A program made the position numbers and the translations under genes. A stretch of 64,000 nt of DNA from Fimbriosthenelais zetlandica (taxonomy: Eukaryota): assembly GCA_977030845.1 (NCBI GenBank), contig OZ365114.1, positions 19,034,001-19,098,000 of the forward strand, in the 5' to 3' direction. This document shows, in pieces, positions 6,301 through 63,822 of the stretch; positions within the stretch are counted from its first letter, which is position 1; each line of letters begins with the position of its first letter. The notes beneath the pieces are model-generated. The model was not told the origin of the DNA. It saw nothing but the letters and a program-made list of their open reading frames with translations, and ran no database searches.

Positions 6301-7000
6301 GGGCATTATCTCATTGAGGGCTTTTCGAGTCCCAAAATGAACCTTTAATCTATTTCATAGGGTGCCCCACACTTCCTCTGTAACTAGAATTGGTGGGTAT
6401 TTAAAGGCATTTTATGCGCACCACTTCCTGAGTTCAAGAATAATTCTTTCGGTACAACCATACAACCAGTGGTGAAACTAACAGCTGTGTCATTATTTCA
6501 TAATTCATGAAGCCAAAGACTGGTCTTGTAGTTGACCTGTCGTGTTTGTCATCTGGCTGTTTTCCAACAGTGGAGTCAGGAGAGCAAGAGAAGATTGCCT
6601 CAAATTAGCCTCCTGCCTATAGTTTCCGAACCTCCAGCAGGCAAAGCAGGACTTACGATTATAGGAGGGCAATTGATGTAAAAGATGACCCAAGTTGGAG
6701 GACGATCATTCCCATGCTCCTTACAGACCTGCAAATTACCAACCCACTTATTCCAGGCTTAAATGAAGCAGGTGTAATGAGCGTTCAATTTAAGCTTGCT
6801 TAATTTATTGGAGTAGAACAAATCTCTCTTTAAAGTCGGTTTGAGGAGGCGCCAATGATTTTCTAAGAGAGATGTTAACGCTCATGAGAGAGATGTACTC
6901 CTAATTTGGCTCCTTAAATGCTTCACTCTATGAATTAAGTAATTGGGAAGCGCTAGAAAGAATTTTAATCAAGGAAGTAATTATTCGTATGTGAAAAGTA
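3400..7000 (-). mobile_element. Decayed LINE ORF2 relic (endonuclease + RT)
   Basis: Motifs appear in ORF2 order on the - strand: YINCPP (~6670), GIAGPDDGVANE (5184-5219, cf. KApGPDGIxNE), NPFLPLIS (~4940-4965, cf. NYRPISL) and ETADD (3987-4001, cf. YADD). Many stops. Confidence 0.5.
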
Positions 7001-50849: not shown

Positions 50850-50995
50850 GGTCAATAACCCAGCCGGGAGGGGAGGCCTCTCCATCCCAGCTGAGGCGGG
50901 AAACGAGCGGGAGGCACCACTAGTGGAACTCTCCTATGAGAATCGCTGGAGGCGCAAAAGGCGTGCAGGCCGGAAGTGGGAAACGAGTCAAAATG
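50850..50995. promoter_or_regulatory. Putative bidirectional CpG promoter between FRMD8 (-) and TMEM60 (+)
   Basis: GC-rich segment with GCGGGAAA (E2F), CCGGAAGT (ETS) and AAAATGGCG (YY1-like, overlapping the ATG). A FRMD8 5' UTR exon donor lies at ~49968. Confidence 0.6.
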
Positions 50996-51373
50996 GCGAC
51001 CATACACCGAGCTCTGTTTACTTGGTTTATGTTGTTAATGTTCGTCATCCTCTTAGTTTTACGCCTGGACGAAAGAGTGAAATGGAACTGGTTTCTTATA
51101 TGTCTGCCCATGTGGATTTTTGATGGGATTCTTATCGTCTATATCACCTTTTACATGGGTTCACACTGCAAAAATGGCTTTGACACTAACGACCAGAGTA
51201 TGGGGCGTAAAGTGGCCTTCTTAGCGGGCATGTTTCTCAAGCTGAGCTTTCAGGTTTTACTGTGTTTAAGACTACAATACTACACAGCACAGCTGAACCT
51301 GTATTATGTCATGATCCCGGCCTGGATGCTGCTTATAGGTTTGATTATTGACATCTCGTTGCGCCTCCGGTGA
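50993..51373 (+). CDS. TMEM60: Transmembrane protein 60, single exon, 126 aa
   Basis: MATIHRALFTWFMLLMFVILLVLRLDERVKWNWFLICLPMWIFD...HCKNGFD...LKLSFQVLLCLRL...YVMIPAW matches the recalled TMEM60 pattern (LLTWLFTLLFLIMLVLKLDEKAPWNWFLIFIPVWIFD). ATG is in AAAATGG context. Confidence 0.9.
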   Translation: MATIHRALFTWFMLLMFVILLVLRLDERVKWNWFLICLPMWIFDGILIVYITFYMGSHCKNGFDTNDQSMGRKVAFLAGMFLKLSFQVLLCLRLQYYTAQLNLYYVMIPAWMLLIGLIIDISLRLR

Positions 51374-51586
51374 CCGTACGGTGGGCGACCCGTCAAGTTG
51401 AGGTCGGACGTCGGGTACACGCGAGTATCCACTAACGTCACTGGCCCTGACGCTCAACTACTGAGAAAAAGATCCCAAAATACCCAGAACAGAGACGTGG
51501 ATGAAGACGAGGCAGATATAGATATCCTAGATGTGGACGACGAGTATGAAGACGATGATATAGGCAGTCTGTTCGTCAGTTTATGA
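51374..51586 (+). other. In-frame 70-codon open extension after the TMEM60 stop (candidate readthrough region)
   Basis: After TGA(51371-51373)-C the frame continues PYGGRPVKLRSDVGYTRV...DVDEDEADIDILDVDDEYEDDDIGSLFVSL to TGA at 51584-51586. Confidence 0.5.
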
Positions 51587-53699
51587 TATTAATGGATTTG
51601 TGACGGGGGGTTAAAATTAGTGCATTGATCCCAGTCTGAATCTAGCATTGTCATTAGCAGTTATAAAATATGTCACATCTTGGTCTAATCATAGATTGAA
51701 TGTACAGGTACTACATTTTAATATTCCCCTTGAGCATTTAGTTCGTAAGAACATATCAGATCATGTATAACCATCACATGTAGCCCCATGTTAAAAAGAT
51801 TTTACAAGATTGTCATTGAGTCATTGTCACAATCCACCAGAAAAAAATACTAGATTGGAATAACATGAGTAACATGTAGGCCTACAAGTCAGTTAGTGAG
51901 TGTTAAGTTAAAATGATTCATTGCAAGGAATTTGTTTTGAAGAGACATGTAAATTTTAACCCTCGTCACTCCATGTTAAGAAACTCAAATCTGGTGCTCT
52001 TAGGTTAGATTTGGCATGATCTAAATATGTAGTCACAGAAGTACAGAGTTCCTCATAAATTGGCAACGGTGCGCACAAAATTAAATAGCAGAATAATAAT
52101 TCATTGACGAATATGCATATCACAAGGACTTTAGTTAGGAAGGAGAACGGTTATAAAATTATGGTGCTATGAAACAGATTAATTGGGATTGAAAATTTCT
52201 TAATTTATATCCTGTTCAAATAAGATTTTAAACTTTCTTCGCACATAAAAACCACCTGTCAACTAATTCCTCATCATTTATACCTGGTCTTCTACGTCTG
52301 ATATTATTAGAATGGCTCAAGTAGTGACTATTTTAATCTACTAACTGATTCCAAGTTTTAACAGACTTTCTCTCTCTCGTCATTCTTCTTGGTCGGATAT
52401 CGAATGTAACAAAAAAGAAATGGGTTAGGATCTTTCTGTGGGAGAATTCCTTTTCTCAAACGGGTCGTCCTTTGTATTTAAACTTGTGTAAATATTGTAT
52501 ATATAATAATTCACCTTGTATACGGGATGAATGTATGGTTATAGGCTGTGGTCCTTGGCTATGAAAATCACTTGGTATTGTGAGATATATTATGACAAAA
52601 TCATGTCAGATCTAGTGTTTTCGCAATGAAAAAGAAAGTCAGATTGACTTATAGGGTTCAAATTCAGTAATTACGCTCTAAACAATTTTAAATTCAGATC
52701 TAAATGCATTTCTCAGGAGAGATGATATATTAATGCATTCTCATGATGGATTCATGAAACCAACATAAAATACCGTACAGTGTAAATATTGGCAAATTGA
52801 ATTGAAAGCTTGCCAAACATGATTTGTATTTGAAACTAGTCCCCCTCTGGGTAAATTATGTAGTTGATGATATGAGTTATTGTGGTTTGTCTACAGAAAT
52901 ATCTATGTGTTGAGACACAACATTGTTTTTAGATAATTCAAACATAAGTGTTACATATAGACAGAAAATCGAGGAGAGAAGATGAACAAAATGTGATGAA
53001 AATAGATCTATGTATTTATTTTTGTATCGTGATATTGTAGTGGCCTAAGTTAAAGAAAAATGTATATATACTCTGAAATATATGGTCCTTGGTTCTATTC
53101 CCTGGACAATTGTTTGTATCAAAATCTGCTGATATCAGTCTGCTTATAAACAAGTTATTTTCGTGGTAATATTTTTTTGTGGGAACATAAGAGATTGTAT
53201 TTATGTTACTTGGATATTTGGAACGATGCTTTGTGCTGTTTAGAGTTTTGGGTGGAGTATACTGTTAAGTTCAGTCATAGAATTGTATCACATTAGATTA
53301 GTTGATGATTGTAAAGTTGTCTATCAATGAGAAATATATATATGCGATATTAAGATACTCAAAGTTGTTTTCCATATGCTATGAATACAGTTCATGTTGT
53401 GCGTTGGCCAATAAAATGATTACCAAAACTGTACCTTGGAGATTTTATGCTAATTTGATCACAGACGCGATAATCTCATCAGTCGATTTATTTCGGATCT
53501 GAATTTCACGTCATTGCAAAATATGATGACTAAAAGTTATGAAAATAGTACTCCTTTACGAATCGCTTATTTAGTAATAATGGTACATCAAATCTTATGA
53601 ACTAAGTTAGTGGCATGCTATGTAACAACTGGGTACGAGACTCAGTGCTTATCCTATTCCACTTGTATCAGTGGATTATATAATAAATATAACTACCTA

Positions 53700-56600
53700 T
53701 CAGATAACCTGTAATCTAGGGACGGGTTGAGAAGGTGCTGCCATCTGTTTCTCTAATTCAGAGTATTCTTTTATGACTGAATTAAGCGACTCGAGGCTTT
53801 CATCAAACTGACATTTCTCCATGCCATCCACGTGTGTATAATGATGAATATGCGCCTGGAAAAAATGGAGATAGTTGTAGCTTTTAATTGTCAAGGCAAA
53901 TTACTTATCGCTCAAACGACGGTGATCAATTTATTTGTAGGATAAACATTTTTTGAGCAATTTGTTCACAAAGTTCAGGCTGTTTGTGAATAAAGATGGA
54001 ATGGAAATTTTATTTTCTAATCGTCCCTTGGCTCACCTTGCGTTTGAAGAGTTTGTGGAATCTGTCACGAAGCTCGGAGAAGTTATTCTTGACGCACGTG
54101 TTGTTGGCCAAGGACAGTAAGGAGAAGGGATGATTGACGGGAGGTACAGAACACAGACCCGTCTTCCAACCTTCTTGATTCCAACTTATGAAATTTAAAG
54201 ATGGACGGAGTCTGCAAAAAAAAAAGAGGAGCACATAATACGTGATAAGTCTGAACACAAGATGCTGATTAGTCTAATTTAAATATGAACCTTAAAATGT
54301 GTTATAATATTTCCAAAATTAGACTTTCTTCCTGGGTGTAGGGATACATAGGCTATTAGAAAGGGGAAAGACAAGGACTACCTGCTTCGTGTAGAGGGGT
54401 AAGATAATACCTACCTGTCTATATTTCTGCGTATATCTGAAGCCTCAATGTCTCCTCGCACCATGAGGGCGCAAGATAAGTAAAGACTGTGTTTTGGATC
54501 GGCCTTGATCATTTGATGGTCCCTAGAAAATGCATCTGTGAACATTTGGTCCAGCCTGAAAAAAAGTTCATGAATGTGTAATACATGTGTCTAAATGTTA
54601 ATTCTTCTTGGATTAATCTATACCATTAAAGACAAATTTTCGATCCATTCCACTTGAAGAAAGAGCAGTCGGGAGCAGTTCAGATCTAGTGATGAAATAT
54701 AGCAAACGGACCTGTTTCTTGGATTTTTTATATCTTTCAACGCGTAAAGAGGAGTTTGACTAGAGACGAGGTAGTGGAGACGGGGGAAGGGTACCAGGTT
54801 CATGGTAATCTCATTCAAGTCAACATTCAGATAGCCATCAAACCGAGCAGAGCTGAAAGACAGGGACGAAAACAAATTAAAACATAATATTTTATATCTA
54901 AAGTTGACTACATTATACTGTGTGAAATACATTTGAATTGTATAATTATAAATGCCGGTTCTTCTTGTTAGAATATTAAAAATTGCATTTTCGTAGAAAA
55001 GACAATAAGATGTTAAGAGGAAAAGTTATGGCTAACTTGTGATGAATTTCATTAGAATTACATGAGATGTAACCATCTGAACAAGAGAAAAGAACTAATT
55101 ATAGAGAACTACCTTGTCATGTTGAGGAGGAGATTGGCTACAATGTTATTCATGCCATCAAAGGGTTTCTCATCCCTGACCTTGGTGGCGCCACCCTCGC
55201 TGGATGTGATGGCGCTCTCTGTTTTCACCCTCACAGCTCCGGTAGAGGTGTACGTCCTCTTACCCGTCTTACTGGATGGGACCGCATCGTTTATCTTATT
55301 GACCAACTCCACCAGAGCCTGAAAAATAAACCATGGAAAACAATGCATCATTTATATTATATTTGTCTTATTGATTTTCTCAAACTTACCCGATATATCA
55401 TCTGAATATTTTATCAGGTCTGTGTTAAAATATAACACTAAATAGGCTCTAAGATTTTTAATGAGATAATGTATGGAAATCTTTTCCTTGGAGAAATTAT
55501 TGCACTAGATGTTAAGAAAAATCTATTAATGTAAAAATGATTAATGACCTGGTTTTCTACAGGCAGCACACAGTCGGCATGATTGGTCAGTTCATTCATG
55601 GCCAGAACGCTGTTATAGGGGGAAGTTATGACGTCATCATCACAGGACGGATATACCGCTGTAACGAATCTGAAATTACATCATTTTGTTATTAATTGTT
55701 AACTCAACTACGAGTGGAATTAAGACATGGATTGGTGATCATAGAAGCCTTTAGACGGCCTAAAATGTATGCAATAAGATCTACAATTTATGTAATAAGA
55801 TCTGTAGATGCTATATTTAGTATCGAAAGGCAATTAATTTAGCTAAATTACATAATATAAATGACTGGGTATGCACCTGTAAACGTCTGGAAATTCGTCC
55901 TCAAGAATATTAAGTACTGCAGTGCCCAAACCTGAACCCGTACCTGATGAAAGAAGGAACACATTCATGAACTTTACTAAAAGTTATTAAAGCAAGATTA
56001 TAAATTGAGATTTACGGTAATTTGTGGGGATTTTTATTCAGTATGCCCAGGTTTATTCCCAGAACTGACTGTGAAATTTTCTCAGGTAGTCTGACCCTTT
56101 GGTTGTGTGTTGGGATGGGGAGAAGCCTTCCCATGACAACTTGAAGTAAACATTTAAAGCTACCAATCAATACGGATCTCACTGCGGTAGTCATGGCAAC
56201 TTAAGTCAACATCAGGAAGCGTGGAGAATCCACTATACTCATATCCCATACTCACACCCAGTGAAATGTCTATAGCACCTCAAATATTCTTCAAAATCAC
56301 AACAAATTTTTAAAGAAATAAAAGCTTTAACACATTGCGTTTACTCCACAAAATTTCTTAGGCTTCCAATTGATTTGGTCATTGTGGGAGTGGTAGTGGT
56401 ACCATTATGAATTCAACAATGGGAATATTTGTTTGGCACCATGGTAATGAATAGTCCTACATTGAGTCACAACCTCGAGAGTATGTAGACAATGATCTCA
56501 ATATACCATGAGCTAGAGCAGCCATGAGGTTAACATGATTAAACGGGGAATTAAACTACAAGTGAAACTGTTCAACTTTGATCCCAACAAAATCTACTTT

Positions 56601-59600
56601 TGTGATTTTTAATATGGAAGTCCCCACTGCTCACATACATGATCAATAGCCAAACAATACTGGTCCACTGTTACATGACCTGTAAAAGCTTACTGGGGGG
56701 ATTAGGAAGTGGGAGGGAGGAGGGGTAGAGGCATACAACGGTGAAATCTATCTGGTCACTTTGGTGCAAATATGAATATAAATTATGGTGCAAATATGAA
56801 TATAAATGATAGTACAATATCTAATTAACTGCCTTGTAATTTGACCTGTGAAGTGTCCAAATATTTTTGTAATTTGTCACAATCGAGAACGAAGGGATAA
56901 CAGGACTATCCTTTTAAAATTCTCAAACGAGCGGAAAGGTACCACCCGTAGAGAGCCCCATGAGTACCTTGAGCCCAGCCAGGTGTGACGGGAGTGGAGG
57001 AGGGAATAGTAGCATGTAGGATTGACGGGACTGGACTAGCCCGGGCCAGGTAACTGACAAGGTAACTCTATATCTGGTAAACCTACCTCAAATCTAAGAC
57101 CAACTCTCTCCTCCAGGACCCACAATTTGAGCTCAGGCATACCTATCACTACACTAAATTGCAGGTAAGTTATCGTATATAAAATGACATATGTCAGACG
57201 TTTTGATCATGGTTTCCATGTTCATATATGTCTAACTTTCCATACATATACATACATGTATTGATCAATTTATGGTCACAGCGTTTAGTCATAGTGAAGC
57301 AGACTTGTGAGGCAGTGGCTTGTTTACATACATGATCTGACAGAGGCATGAATGTAATACATTCCAAGTTACATTCTACCCATATGTCACTTTTAAATTT
57401 TACTTAAGTTAGCCATCATATGTTAGGAGTATAACGGCAACTACATTTTCATTCAATACTCCCGTTACAAAATGAGGATAGGCCTTATATTAGGCCGATA
57501 ATTTAATATTGAATTATAAGAAACAAATCAATATTCAGTGACACTAGTACAAATGTCAATAAATACACTTATTGTTACATCTATGTAATGTAGTTAATCA
57601 ATTTTTAGTCAATAGCTACATTATACTGGCCATTATTTATTTTAGCAACATGTTGTTGCACATAATGATGTAGCTTACACTTGGCCTAACATATGTATCA
57701 GATTCCAAAGGACTTTGTCTGTCCCTTTGTTTGGATTTAATCAAATTGATATTCCATTTATGTTATAATCTATACACATGCGCGAGATCAGGCACATGCA
57801 TGTAACATTATATTTATAATGTATTGAATATATTTTCAGACTGATGTGAAGCAAGGAGCAAAGGACAACCATCTGTATGGATACAAACAAGTAGTAGTCA
57901 GTTTTCAACAGAGCACAAACATGGAAGCTATGGGTTCAGAACTGATCAGATTTCGTGGTCCAGACTCTGACGAATACACGATCACAAGAAGGATCGAGAC
58001 AATCGTAAGCTGTGCCCTGTGTCGATTACCTTACAAAGAACCCAAGACTTTACCATGTGCCCACACCTTCTGTAAGAGATGTCTGGGGGACTATGTCCTA
58101 CAGCAGAGAATGCAGGACTCTAACAGGTGTCCTGCATACTTCCCCTGTCCTACATGTGAGAGGACCTGTCCTGTCCCTGCCAGGTGGGCCAACCTCCCCA
58201 GTCAAGAGATTCTGAAGACATTGGCTGAAACCGTCAATTCCTCAACCTCCACTCAGGAATGCACTATATGTGGCAGCCAAGGCAAGCGTTTGGCTTCCTC
58301 ATATTATTGTGTTAAATGTGAGGATTTTCTCTGTGAGGAATGCTCCAAGAGCCACAAGAAAACCAGGATGACCTGGGATCATTTACTGGTCAGGATGACT
58401 TCCATGCAATACGCTCAGCAAACCCAGACCAGTGCCACTAAGATGTTCGCCAAATTTGGTCGTCACGGCGAGGACCTCAACTTCCCTCACAGTATTTGCA
58501 CCAACAAGGCTGATGATGTCATTGTTTCAAATGATAATAATGAAATAACAGTGTTTACTGCAGGTGGGTCTTGCAAGAAACACTTGAACCAGCAACCCTT
58601 TTTTGGGGACACCACCCTATATCCCCATAACCCAAATCGTGGCATTGCCTTCACTCAGGAAGGGTACGTAGCTGTGGCCATTAGGAAGAAAGTGACCAGT
58701 GATTCCATGACATGTGTGGCAGTGATTGAATCACTAGCCAGTCGGGAGATAGGGAACTGTCAGACTAAAATCAGTGACTACGGCTCCTGTCAACCGTCAG
58801 GAATTGCCATCATGGTTAACAACTGTATAGCGATTTCCGATGCTGGACTTCACTGTGTTTATATCTTTGATGAAAAGTACAAATTTGTTAAAAAGTTTGG
58901 CAAGAAAGGGAGTGGGGACAATAAGTTTTTATCACCATATTATGTTGCAGTTAATAGACGCAATGAGATTCTAGTCTCTGACCATGGTAACCATTGGATT
59001 AAAGTGTTCGATTCCAAGGGCAAATTCAGAAGAAAGATAGGTGGTATGGGACTAAACAATGGCCACTTCCTGCATCCAATGGGCCTCTGTGTTGACCCAG
59101 ATGGTAATATCTTGGTAGCTGATAGGGATAATCATCGCATCCAAGTTTTCGATATTGCGGGCAAATATATCTGCACCATAGTCAGGGAAACCTTTGAGAA
59201 AGGCAAGGACATAAGGCCCATTGATTTAGCCTTTAATAACAGTGGCCAACTCATAGTCCTACTCAAAGGTATAGAAGGTGAGGACTTTGCTGAAATCAGA
59301 GCTTATGACTATGACCTTGACGGGACAAAGAGGAGAAAGAAGAAACAGGCTTCTATAAGGAGTGGGAGATATGGAAGCGCTCCAGCCAGTGGTCACAGAT
59401 CCAGACCAGATGAATACACCGAGGAGGAGGAATTCCAGAACTTTGAAGGGCACGCATCACCATCTCAGAGGTCAGGAAAGGGGAGATTATCGAGGCCTGC
59501 CCTTCCTCCCATTGGAGGGTCTACACATAAAATGTACGAGCGACCACTTCATTTTGTGGCTAATAATGGAGAGCATTCCCGGGCACCCAGTGCTCCTGGC

Positions 59601-62600
59601 CACCGTATTCGACATGACACGGACAACGACGAGTATGAAGAGATCGGCAGGACACCTCCCAGCAGGAGGCGGCGGAGGAGGAGGAGTGCTAAAACCAGAA
59701 CAGTACAACCCCCAGCCTCGAAAATATGTAGCGTAATGTGATGAGAAACTGCATAAATATTTAATTTTTAGTCTGAAGTGAATATCTTTAGTCATAGTCA
59801 TGTACATGTATCTTACAATTATCCTGATGTATATCGAATATCAGAATGCAAGACTTAATAAATTTCACTCTTAACTGTGCAATGTTTTCTTGGCAATCAT
59901 ATACTATTCAATATGTAGATATGGCCAACTCAATAGCTATGTTTTACGGTGAGAGATTTCAAAAGAAAGCTTTAGTGAAAGCTATTTTCTTTTATCTTTA
60001 GATCAAGGTTGTCTCCAATGTTCCCCAATTCTTCCACACGTTTATTCTCTAGTTGTTCAACGTGGTGTAGACCACTAAGCCTGGCAGGCCATCAAAGGTA
60101 TTATAATCATAGAAATGTCAGAGGATTCTATATATATGGTGGACCAGCTCACCTGTATTGGATGCTCTGACATTCACTCAAATGAATTCTACCTGTTTCC
60201 TAGACATAATTGGGCTGTCATATCGGCAAAAATTGTGAAATTTAAACGGACAGAGAATTAAAATAGAATATAATTTCCTTCAGACCGCCATTTCATAAAA
60301 TCATATAGGTAAACCAGAAAGACATACTAACTGATAACCATGCAGAAATAAATCCCAGTCAAATATAGAATTAGGGTACTTTTAGCAAGAACTTTTTCCT
60401 AGCCATAATTTCATAGACAGATCTGGGTAACCACAAGAGACTGACCGATTAAAACGGGCATTTAAAACAGAGGTTAAATATACAGATGGGCAGATACTCA
60501 AATAATAGAGGGATTAGGGTCTGGTAGTGAGAAATCTCAGACGTTATGGCCTCCACATCATTGATCCCCCAGGCCAACACTCCATGCAGGTTGATTTTGG
60601 CCCAGTGATAACAACCACCTTGTCTGTGAAAGGCAGGTAAAAGATAACAGGTACGCTAAGACCCCGCTACCACACTCCCTCAAATGGCACATACAGCTGC
60701 ATATTATAGTTCACCAATAAAGGCAATGATTGAAAACGGAGGTTCTCTTGAAAAGTAATGAAAACAGACGATATGTTGAAGTTTATAAACGTTGGCAATA
60801 AAATAGTGTGTAAGAGACTCAATTTGAGAATGAACGGTTTAGTAGCAAGTATACGGTAGCATTAAAAGTGATGCTCTATGATCAAAATCTGCCTCAGTCC
60901 CGGCTGAGGCACGAGGCGTGACACAAGACAGGGACTGTTTGGGTGGCTAAAAGTAAAAGGATATCACAGTAAACGGACTCGAAATTGCACTAAATTATTA
61001 TACAGACATAAACAAAGGTAGGTTTTGGGGCATGAAAATCTGGATAGAATCTATTGGATTACTTCATCCATATGATATATATTGTGAAGTTTCATGTGCT
61101 CGAGTTGGGGGAGCTGGTATCTTTGAATAATTATATATCATTTTTCTATTTCAGAAACACTGGAGAAATATTAAATAATTATGACCTCATTTACAAAGTG
61201 ATATTAAGTAACACTTGTGAGCCTAAAATCTTCATTATGGAGTCCTCCTTAGCCACTCAGATACAAAACGAGTGTCTGACGTGTGACATCTGCAAATGTT
61301 CTTTTATTAAACCAAAAGCTCTGCCTTGCCTTCACACATTCTGCTGTGAATGTCTAGACCGCTATGTCCATACTAATGTTGCTAGGTACCTCCCGTGCCC
61401 TGTGTGTCGGCGAAGGTTTAAAGTGCCAAGGAAAGGAGTGAGTATCTTCCCAAGTAACCATCTTATTAATGGCATATCTGAACTAATAGACAAACATGTG
61501 GCTCATCACGGCCAGTACAAACAACCAGACGCCTGCGTGCCTTCGGGAGGGATTAAAGGAGCCAATCTTCTATCAGAGCTAGTTGGAAACTTCAACGAGG
61601 ATGGAAATGAATGCCCATTCCTCGGTACCAGCAATAACGAAGCAAGTCAGGACAGACAGGAGTCACTTGCTGAGAATATAACTCAAAATCTAGCAGGGGC
61701 AAGTGTAGAATCCCGCCGGTTGAACCCACAAGATGTGCACGTGTCCAGACCTTCTCTGGCGGCTGTGAGCCGTACTGAGATATTCGTGGATACCAGCGGT
61801 CGTTCACACTCTGAGAGCAGCTCGGAGCTTAACCTCTCTCCTGATTTCATCTGGACACAGAATATGTCTCCACAGAAATGTCCCCATCATGAGGCTTTAG
61901 CCTTCTGGGTGGACACTCATCTGGTGGACCAGGAAGCCCTACATCGCTTTGGTCAGTATGGTGCTAACCTGGCAGACTATACAGCCCCTATGAGTCTAGC
62001 TACAACCAGCACCGGGGAAGTGGTCGTCTCTGATTTAAGAGAGAACCGAGTGATTGTCCATAACAGGGAAGGTGGCCTTTGTGTGAGTTTTCAATGTCAG
62101 GAGGAGATCCGAGGCATTGCTGTCACAAGTGACAAGGTTATAGTAGTTGCGGTGGCTTACTCTGACACAGACGCCATCCACTGCTATAACATGGGTGGAG
62201 AACACATTCACTCGGTAGTCAAAAACTCACCCTATGAGCAACCACATGGCGTGTCAGTGACGCGGAACAATAGAATACTTCTAACTATGGTTGATTCAGG
62301 AGATGTGCATTCAGTGGAAAGTCTGGCCATAGGGGAAGGGGAGCCTGGGGTTCAGCCTAAATTAACTTGTAAAATATTAAACCCAACTGCAATGAAAGTT
62401 ACTCCCTATTACATAGACACTAGCCATAATGGTAACATCATAATAGCAGATGCAGAAAACAAGGTGGTCCGGGTATATGATGAGAAGGGGGAAGCGCTGT
62501 TCACATTTGGAAGCAATGAACTGAAAGCACCTAGAGGAGTATGCACAGACTATAAAGATAACATAGTGGTGGCTGATGCAGAAAGGAGGGCTGTGTTACT

Positions 62601-63822
62601 GTTCGACTGTAAAGGGAAGTACCTTAGAACCATTATGCAGTACTCCATGGACAGAAATAACCGGTTTCTTCTATTTCCTATTGATGTGTCTATTAGAAAT
62701 TTTGAACTCTTTGTTCTGGTTGTAGCACCTTTCTATTGCCAAGTCCGAGTTTATGGTTATAGACCCGTGCCTCTGGCTGGAGAGGCGCAAACTTCCATCT
62801 GTTCAACTATGTGAAATATACTGGTTCAAAAGAAGACGGAAACATGGAATCTGTAGGAATCCTACGTGTTATGATTTTTTTTTCAATTCAACCTAGAAAC
62901 AAAGCCCAAATTAAACCCCAAGTCCTATAGAAGAGGGAATTAAAGGAAAATAAATAATATGTTTTGTTCATTGTTACTTATTTCTACCCCCTTCGTTTAT
63001 CCCTTCCAGTTCCAAATACAATGTACAGAGACTCTGTACTGTACTGTGAACGATGGTTCCACTCTTCTACTTCCAAGAGCAATTCCCTGCCCTGGGAGAC
63101 ATGGACAAAATTGTTTAGTATAATTAAAGATTTGATCATAAATTAGTACATACCTCCACCCATGGAATGAAGGACGAAGAAACACTGTAAACAGTCACAG
63201 AACTCGGCAGATCGTCTAACTATGTCTGAAATATGTTCCCTGTAGCGAGTACCGTAGTCCATGTGTCCAACAGCCCTGAGGATTAAATAAAGTATTTATT
63301 AGTATTTCAGGACTAAAAGAAAAAGGCCGCCTATAATTTTCAAAGCGTGGATACACTGTAATATAAATAAGTAAAAACTGACGAGGAGCAGGAAAGGGAT
63401 TTTATTGAATTATTAAATAGTAGAATTAAATTAAAAGTACTGACCAGTTATTCCCTGAACCAGACACGTCTGTAATGTGCTGTCTGTGATCGAAAACATC
63501 TTTCAGTGGACCTTTCATTATCTCACTGACGACACCTTCCTCCATATCAATAAGAACTGACTGAAAGTAAAGATATAATAATGTGTCAACGATAGTCAGA
63601 AATCCGAATTAAGGAGAACTAATTGAATTTCTTGGCCATAACGAACCTAAACTATCATTTTTAGTATTATTTATCATGGTTCATACAAAAAAATTAGCCT
63701 ACCCGAGCTTTGAGAGAGCGTATTCTGCCAGGGACAGACCCCAGTGGGATTTCAGCAGGGTCGTCATAGCGTGTGTCCACATTTCGGAAGAAACTATTCA
63801 TAGACTCATCGAAGATTCCTTT
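53700..63822 (-). CDS. TUBE1: Epsilon tubulin (5' exons lie beyond the window end)
   Basis: 10 exons: 63703-63822, 63445-63560, 63154-63275, 55877-55943, 55549-55669, 55113-55318, 54712-54852, 54415-54555, 54037-54211, 53700-53855 (455 codons, in frame). Peptides SFFRNVDTR, VLIDMEEGVV, SGSGNNWAVGH, HSMGGGTGSGLG, DVITSPYNS, SWNQEGWKTGLCSVPP. Confidence 0.95.
57921..59741 (+). CDS. RING-B-box-NHL (TRIM-NHL-like) protein 1, 606 aa, intronless CDS, C-terminal CSVM
   Basis: RING CALC...PCAHTFCKRC...CPTC; B-box CTIC...CVKCEDFLCEECSKSH...DH; NHL repeats (FLSPYYVAVN, FLHPMGLCVDPDGNILVADRDNHRIQVFD). The ATG at 57921 lies downstream of a splice acceptor at 57840. Confidence 0.9.
   Translation: MEAMGSELIRFRGPDSDEYTITRRIETIVSCALCRLPYKEPKTLPCAHTFCKRCLGDYVLQQRMQDSNRCPAYFPCPTCERTCPVPARWANLPSQEILKTLAETVNSSTSTQECTICGSQGKRLASSYYCVKCEDFLCEECSKSHKKTRMTWDHLLVRMTSMQYAQQTQTSATKMFAKFGRHGEDLNFPHSICTNKADDVIVSNDNNEITVFTAGGSCKKHLNQQPFFGDTTLYPHNPNRGIAFTQEGYVAVAIRKKVTSDSMTCVAVIESLASREIGNCQTKISDYGSCQPSGIAIMVNNCIAISDAGLHCVYIFDEKYKFVKKFGKKGSGDNKFLSPYYVAVNRRNEILVSDHGNHWIKVFDSKGKFRRKIGGMGLNNGHFLHPMGLCVDPDGNILVADRDNHRIQVFDIAGKYICTIVRETFEKGKDIRPIDLAFNNSGQLIVLLKGIEGEDFAEIRAYDYDLDGTKRRKKKQASIRSGRYGSAPASGHRSRPDEYTEEEEFQNFEGHASPSQRSGKGRLSRPALPPIGGSTHKMYERPLHFVANNGEHSRAPSAPGHRIRHDTDNDEYEEIGRTPPSRRRRRRRSAKTRTVQPPASKICSVM
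61237..62814 (+). CDS. RING-NHL protein 2, 525 aa, intronless CDS, C-terminal CSTM
   Basis: RING CDICKC...PCLHTFCCEC...CPVC; NHL repeats (PRGVCTDYKDNIVVAD, PYYIDTSHNGNIIIAD). 5' UTR intron 61018-61154 (donor AAG|GTAGGT, acceptor TTTCAG). Confidence 0.9.
   Translation: MESSLATQIQNECLTCDICKCSFIKPKALPCLHTFCCECLDRYVHTNVARYLPCPVCRRRFKVPRKGVSIFPSNHLINGISELIDKHVAHHGQYKQPDACVPSGGIKGANLLSELVGNFNEDGNECPFLGTSNNEASQDRQESLAENITQNLAGASVESRRLNPQDVHVSRPSLAAVSRTEIFVDTSGRSHSESSSELNLSPDFIWTQNMSPQKCPHHEALAFWVDTHLVDQEALHRFGQYGANLADYTAPMSLATTSTGEVVVSDLRENRVIVHNREGGLCVSFQCQEEIRGIAVTSDKVIVVAVAYSDTDAIHCYNMGGEHIHSVVKNSPYEQPHGVSVTRNNRILLTMVDSGDVHSVESLAIGEGEPGVQPKLTCKILNPTAMKVTPYYIDTSHNGNIIIADAENKVVRVYDEKGEALFTFGSNELKAPRGVCTDYKDNIVVADAERRAVLLFDCKGKYLRTIMQYSMDRNNRFLLFPIDVSIRNFELFVLVVAPFYCQVRVYGYRPVPLAGEAQTSICSTM

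Follow-up and report, generated by a model that had tools for sequence, protein, structure and literature searches.

To our knowledge, there is ample documentation of conserved stop-codon readthrough for insects and for a handful of genes in vertebrates, and hardly any for lophotrochozoans. The conserved readthrough genes of insects were defined by comparative genomics (Jungreis et al., Mol Biol Evol 2016, PMC5100048). The locus described here, a TMEM60 gene within a 64,000-nucleotide stretch of DNA from Fimbriosthenelais zetlandica (hereafter the window), resembles these genes in that its stop is kept across species in the preferred UGA-C context and is followed by an in-frame coding signature which extends to the next stop, for which no SECIS element was found and splicing is an unlikely explanation. 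It differs from them in that the organism is a lophotrochozoan-type animal and in that two species are compared rather than 12–21. In aquaporin-4, the stop lies in a UGA-CUAG context and the tail behind it comprises 29 residues. AQP4ex, the readthrough isoform of this protein, carries an extension that governs the site at which the protein is anchored (PMC6444679). As in AQP4ex, a multi-pass membrane protein would here acquire a C-terminal cytosolic extension by readthrough of a UGA. Unlike in AQP4ex, the post-stop context is UGA-CCG and not the well-studied UGA-CUAG, the extension of 70 residues has no sequence similarity to that of aquaporin-4, and an effect on localisation is only inferred. 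In tombusviruses, pairing between a proximal and a distal readthrough element is required for readthrough (Cimino et al. 2011, PMC3234231). The TMEM60 locus likewise features, just 3′ of the stop presumed to be read through, a sequence complementary to a far-downstream 3′ element; however, the tombusvirus partners are separated by ~3.5 kb in a viral RNA genome, whereas here the gap between the partners amounts to 1.07–1.26 kb in a cellular gene. Readthrough has also been proposed for the EFLGa neuropeptide precursor of the annelid Platynereis (Conzelmann et al. 2013, as cited in PMC5100048). As far as that citation goes, the likeness consists in the proposal of readthrough in a lophotrochozoan, while gene and product are unrelated.

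The tail itself was likened in the original prediction to those of LIR-bearing ER-phagy receptors, which include FAM134B, SEC62, TEX264 and others. Like these, it would be the disordered, acidic cytosolic tail of a membrane protein and would present an F-x-x-L core. The aromatic residue of a canonical LIR comes immediately after acidic or phospho-acceptor residues, whereas here the core is preceded by G-S-L and forms the very C-terminus. No link between TMEM60 and translational readthrough was found in the literature searched.

The TMEM60 gene and the open frame behind its stop

The core coding sequence of TMEM60 occupies positions 50993–51370 on the plus strand and specifies, in 126 codons, a TMEM60-type protein of 126 amino acids with four hydrophobic segments, ending in LRLR. 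The protein scores 44.7 bits against the Pfam family PF10269 (Tmemb_185A; cut-off 23.1) and shares the four-helix architecture and the length of ~130 aa of this family. Its identity to gastropod proteins named transmembrane protein 60 by NCBI and to a Capitella protein is 54–63%, and that to mollusc proteins named TMEM60 is 54–57%. A further in-frame ATG is located upstream at 50936 and would, with the intervening segment 50936–50992, give rise to an ORF of 145 aa. Since interspecies conservation begins only at 50989, the ATG at 50993 rather than that at 50936 is taken as the true start. Given the four hydrophobic segments and the distribution of K and R, the N-terminus, the basic middle loop and the C-terminus should share one side of the membrane, and according to the positive-inside rule the C-terminus should be cytosolic.

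The first stop is a UGA at 51371–51373, directly followed by C51374. TGA-C is usually the least favoured and leakiest termination context. As the original prediction had anticipated, this stop is located near the point at which TMEM60 proteins normally end, all 36 homologues of the core that were found terminating within a few residues of it, and it is followed by exactly 70 sense codons (51374–51583) whose product would be basic near the stop, acidic further on and invariant at the C-terminus. The frame is closed by a second TGA at 51584–51586, which is followed by TAT and by a further in-frame TAA at 51590–51592 as a back-up. The AT-rich composition noted behind the second stop was likewise confirmed, with GC content falling from 0.505 in the extension to 0.32 over the next 2 kb. 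The probability of encountering 70 open codons by chance is 2.7% at the composition of the extension itself and 0.3% at that of the flanks. At its C-terminal end, the tail reads DDEYEDDDIGSLFVSL, in agreement with the original prediction.

TGA is an ordinary stop in this genome and ends two proteins of the window directly after a CaaX box, as well as the convergent gene. The long plus-strand ORFs at 57828–59741 and 61048–62814 have the CaaX-type C-termini CSVM and CSTM directly before their TGA.

Coding constraint and the origin of the extension

The one close relative present in the sequences searched is represented by the Logan contigs L001 and L002, which stem from two sequencing runs and encode a core protein 94% identical to that of the window. 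Among these sequences, the tail was found only in this relative and in the species of the window, and the substitution statistics given for the extension compare the two. Synonymous sites of the core are essentially saturated between the two (pS ~0.70), with a dN/dS of 0.015 at a pS of 0.695 for the core. The TGA-C is identical in L001 and L002, and the relative also retains the reading frame, the second TGA and the back-up TAA; the motif that spans the tandem stops, TGATATTAAT, is identical in both species. Indels within the extension are confined to one of 3 and one of 9 nt. Across the 66 alignable codons, differences are distributed 7/6/26 over the three codon positions (26 of 39 in third positions, p = 2e-5), synonymous changes account for 27 of 39 (p = 6e-10), and dN/dS is 0.063 at a pS of 0.615. 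The two shifted frames of the extension show an omega of 1.6–1.7 and contain 4–8 stops. On the opposite strand, the antisense frame that shares third positions with the sense frame reaches an omega of 0.174 and bears a conserved internal stop; antisense coding was rejected, and this signal regarded as a shadow of the sense frame.

The boundaries of this conservation are sharp. By blastn, the 7.1-kb contig of the relative aligns to the window in three stretches only, namely 50989–51593 (from the TMEM60 core through the back-up stop), 53709–53858 (a coding exon of the convergent minus-strand gene) and 52427–52511 (a small island). The first of these alignments ends at 51593, 7 nt past the second stop, and the 200 nt flanking 50989–51593 on either side are identical at shuffle level only. 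The in-frame coding signature lies between the first and the second stop and ends at the latter. The last coding exon of the convergent gene, used as a control for ordinary exon conservation between the two species, is located on the minus strand at 53700–53894 in the window and at 6494–6739 in L001 and is 77% identical. This gene ends ...PRLQVI-TGA in the window and, one codon further on, ...PRLQIVS-TAG in the relative; no Pfam family match was obtained for it.

Judged by these patterns, the extension is protein-coding in the TMEM60 frame and stands behind a stop kept by selection. With neither a sense codon at the stop position nor a frameshift or a stop within the extension, the relative lends support to the readthrough reading put forward in the original prediction. 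Its conservation also excludes the base error, the recent nonsense allele and the CpG-island artefact that had been raised as caveats. That the stretch is instead conserved as a regulatory element of the 3′ UTR, acting as RNA or DNA and not translated, is in keeping with the nucleotide-level constraint on 51368–51403 and with the complementarity of this region to a distal island. Such an element nevertheless fails to explain the third-position bias, the 15 of 15 C-terminal residues that are identical over nine synonymous changes, the indels in threes, the frame that is open in one phase and the boundary exactly at the tandem stop, and is highly improbable as the origin of this conservation.

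Alternative splicing could also excise the stop and so attach a coding extension to TMEM60 or to a different upstream exon, be it through a 33-nt micro-intron (G/GTGACC to TTGAG/G) or through an acceptor at 51397 or 51402 in another transcript. Frame-preserving GT..AG pairs common to both species do exist, the shortest being the 33-nt one, but such pairs are expected by chance. All of them were enumerated and none was found to have credible signals: the acceptors follow GC- and purine-rich sequence devoid of a polypyrimidine tract, and the donors are poor. Moreover, 33 nt would be very short for an animal intron, and the ten codons inside the would-be intron carry synonymous third-position changes only. 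Splicing, which would in addition render both the match with the TMEM60 frame and the conserved stop context coincidental, is considered quite unlikely.

Alternatively, the tail might be produced as a separate small protein, not fused to TMEM60, by reinitiation or by initiation at a non-AUG codon such as the conserved TTG at 51398. This TTG is codon 9 of the tail, and ORF callers list an ORF of 62 aa in the window and of 60 aa in L001 at this point. The separate protein would, however, have to do without a conserved AUG: the tail of the window is free of ATG, and the only one that occurs in the tail of the relative is not conserved. A one-in-three coincidence of frame and an open stretch reaching back to the stop would be required in addition, and the residues before the TTG are conserved as well, with one synonymous change. 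Since it would also leave the retained leaky UGA-C and its invariant context unexplained, independent initiation is a decidedly unlikely source of the tail.

A conserved in-frame UGA followed by conserved coding sequence is also what a selenocysteine codon would look like. The search for a SECIS element proposed in the original prediction yielded none in either species: Rfam returned no SECIS-family match at E<=10 in the 2.4–3.4 kb downstream, a hand-written SECIS pattern scan returned no candidate, and the only conserved downstream island is devoid of an AUGA core. All other homologues terminate at the position of the UGA, and no redox-type motif surrounds it; decoding as selenocysteine is exceedingly unlikely.

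A-to-I editing of A51373, converting the stop into UGG (Trp) before translation, would yield the same in-frame fusion as readthrough. A51373 lies within a 10-nt palindrome (51373–51382), and the long-range duplex discussed below starts 10 nt downstream. In contrast, no conserved double-stranded partner extends over the stop codon itself; a pairing of 51369–51371 is found for the window and not for the relative, and the palindrome permits a hairpin of 3 bp only. An edited stop therefore appears very unlikely. As an observation in its own right, the palindrome, ACCGTACGGT, is perfect, has the A of the stop as its first letter and is unchanged in the relative.

Because splicing, a SECIS element, an independent ATG and editing find little support, programmed stop-codon readthrough is favoured and is likely to be the correct, as it is the best, explanation of these sequence patterns. 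A stop has been kept in place of a sense codon presumably because both isoforms are needed. The TMEM60 mRNA would bear a conserved leaky UGA-C stop at which most ribosomes probably terminate, giving rise to the ordinary four-helix membrane protein of 126 aa. In a fraction of ribosomes, the UGA would be decoded by a near-cognate tRNA, and translation would proceed for 70 codons up to the tandem TGA/TAA. The product would be an isoform of 197 aa with an added tail that would most likely be disordered and lie in the cytosol, the likeliest role of this tail being to alter the sorting or the binding partners of the protein.

RNA features around the stop

An invariant run of 26 nt (51368–51393, plus strand) reaches from the last sense codon across the UGA and 20 nt beyond, and no other stretch of the gene is identical over such a length. 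Synonymous changes in the gene are sparsest in the windows at codons 126–133. The original prediction had pointed to complementary pentamers behind the stop, ACCCG (51388–51392) with CGGGT (51412–51416) and CGACC with GGTCG, as a potential stimulatory hairpin. The pentamers are present at the coordinates given, but the local hairpin did not hold up: compared with shuffled sequences in RNAfold, its stability corresponds to a z of +0.46 in the window and +1.70 in the relative, and the pairing of CGACC with GGTCG is broken in the relative by a G-to-A change at 51403. A different local stem-loop at 51396–51459 (plus strand) was returned by RNAalifold and RNAfold, with the same basal stem in both species and one double change from G-C to A-U. 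This structure is weak (z only -1.4 and +0.15); it was rejected for want of significance and retained only as a possible competitor structure.

Duplex scans instead brought up a distal partner. Between TMEM60 and the convergent gene, no non-coding sequence is conserved other than an island with an invariant core of 19 nt at 52452–52470 (plus strand). This core is complementary to a proximal segment at 51383–51403 (plus strand), with which it can form a duplex of 17 bp, consisting of 11 bp (51383–51393), a bulge of 4 nt and a further 6 bp (51398–51403). Within the proximal segment, the relative differs only at 51394 in the bulge and at 51403, where a G-U pair becomes A-U. When all downstream 30-nt windows were scored against the post-stop region, the island emerged as the best partner in both species, at -34.0 and -31.1 kcal/mol (z = -5.4 and -4.5). 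In the reverse scan of the 19-mer, the post-stop segment was the best partner over 8 kb of the window, at -25.9 kcal/mol (z = -6.1) versus -17.4 for the next, and likewise in L001, at -27.0 versus -18.8 (7–8 kb scans). The complementarity, which resembles the PRTE-DRTE arrangement of tombusviruses, is conserved, and the two segments are reciprocal best partners with z = -4.5 to -6.4. An origin of the island from a repeat or transposon was rejected, the 19-mer and the 26-mer each being unique in the window.

It is tempting to speculate that pairing of the invariant segment 10–30 nt behind the UGA (51383–51403) with the island ~1.07 kb downstream (52452–52470) sets the level of readthrough in a cellular animal mRNA; on the strength of the complementarity this is a possibility, albeit a doubtful one. 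The pairing would compete with the local stem for the same UUGAG. An AATAAA/ATTAAA hexamer is found on the plus strand ~490 nt past the second stop in both species. Because this poly(A)-signal hexamer stands upstream of the island in both, the island may be confined to transcripts with a long 3′ UTR, in which case alternative polyadenylation would be tied to whether the short or the tailed protein is made. The island could, however, belong to the 3′ UTR of the convergent gene instead, in which case it would share sequence sense, and not complementarity, with the post-stop segment.

The tail, its distribution and its possible role

From the stop onwards, the tail consists of a proximal block, the basic stretch L-R-K-R-S-Q, an acidic run that varies in length and, at the C-terminus, the invariant DEYEDDDIGSLFVSL. 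The first 21 residues of the proximal block are identical in both species. Within this block, the codons at 51416–51427 (plus strand) specify Y-T-R-V, 15 residues past the stop, which may be read as a motif of the YxxΦ type. The last 15 residues (51539–51583, plus strand) are likewise identical in the relative, and the 9 nucleotide changes found in 8 of their codons are all synonymous. Taken together, a cytosolic sorting or docking tail would be the most economical reading of these elements.

The original prediction was right in that the tail ends with F-V-S-L, a core of the LIR type ([W/F/Y]-x-x-[L/I/V]) located at the very C-terminus and invariant in both species. The pattern [WFY]xx[LIV] is very common, also by chance. 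The three residues preceding the core (-3 to -1), G-S-L, include one Ser and are not acidic, the acidic run being located at -7 to -5. A function as LIR and ER-phagy receptor would be a possible reading of the F-V-S-L core; in view of YTRV, RKR and the acidic cluster, a general sorting tail in the cytosol would be at least as good a reading. A class II PDZ ligand, an acidic-cluster signal or an FFAT-like motif would be equally eligible.

Homologues of the tail were sought with HMMER among 1.84 billion representatives and by a word-indexed search of 5.8 billion proteins, in Pfam and the ESM Atlas, and in JGI metagenome contigs by peptide and by an invariant 23-mer; from all of these, only the relative's own ORF was recovered. 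The comparison was widened to eleven further loci encoding other TMEM60 homologues, with DNA for ten of these, and among them only a capitellid pair shows anything, and that weakly. At the five nearest other homologue loci with DNA (~60% identity), 2–13 open codons follow the stop and no tail is present. Because these nearest homologues are devoid of it, the tail is, as far as these sequences indicate, lineage-restricted, and its function is not inferable from relatives. In the protein tree, the clade of the window groups with tail-less sequences and not with the capitellids.

In the capitellid pair, L008 (Capitella teleta KB291874.1, 2391–2513) and L010 (934–1056), the frame behind TGA-C stays open for exactly 39 codons. 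The two extensions have aligned second stops and share a Y-x-Q-L-P ~14 residues past the first stop; their nucleotide identity is 42%, with no codon-position bias and an omega of ~0.6. They may represent a second, fast-evolving readthrough tail of the TMEM60 family, for which these features are suggestive at most. In one metagenomic homologue, TGA-C precedes a frame that is open for at least 31 codons, a feature that its own relative does not share. Overall, the stop context is TGA-C in seven of 12 TMEM60 loci (L004, L007, L008, L010, L011, the window and L001), or in 6 of 10 distinct genes when L001/L002 and L005/L006 are each counted once; this set includes two genes with only 2–3 further codons before a second TGA. 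Another TMEM60 lineage, exemplified by the ENA homologues P0025 and P0026, has an ordinary, stop-free C-terminal tail of ~25–30 residues, ending ...IRNPPR-x-SER-x-SF in both. C-terminal tails have therefore been gained more than once by TMEM60.

The locus constitutes a clean case, in which the first stop, the frame and the second, tandem stop have all persisted despite saturation at synonymous sites. If the long-range pairing is functional, a cellular mRNA of an animal would be using a distant readthrough element of the kind found in viruses, of which we know no earlier example. For TMEM60, a protein without an established molecular function, the tailed isoform would provide a testable handle, and pull-downs with the tail could reveal the trafficking or autophagy machinery that the protein meets.
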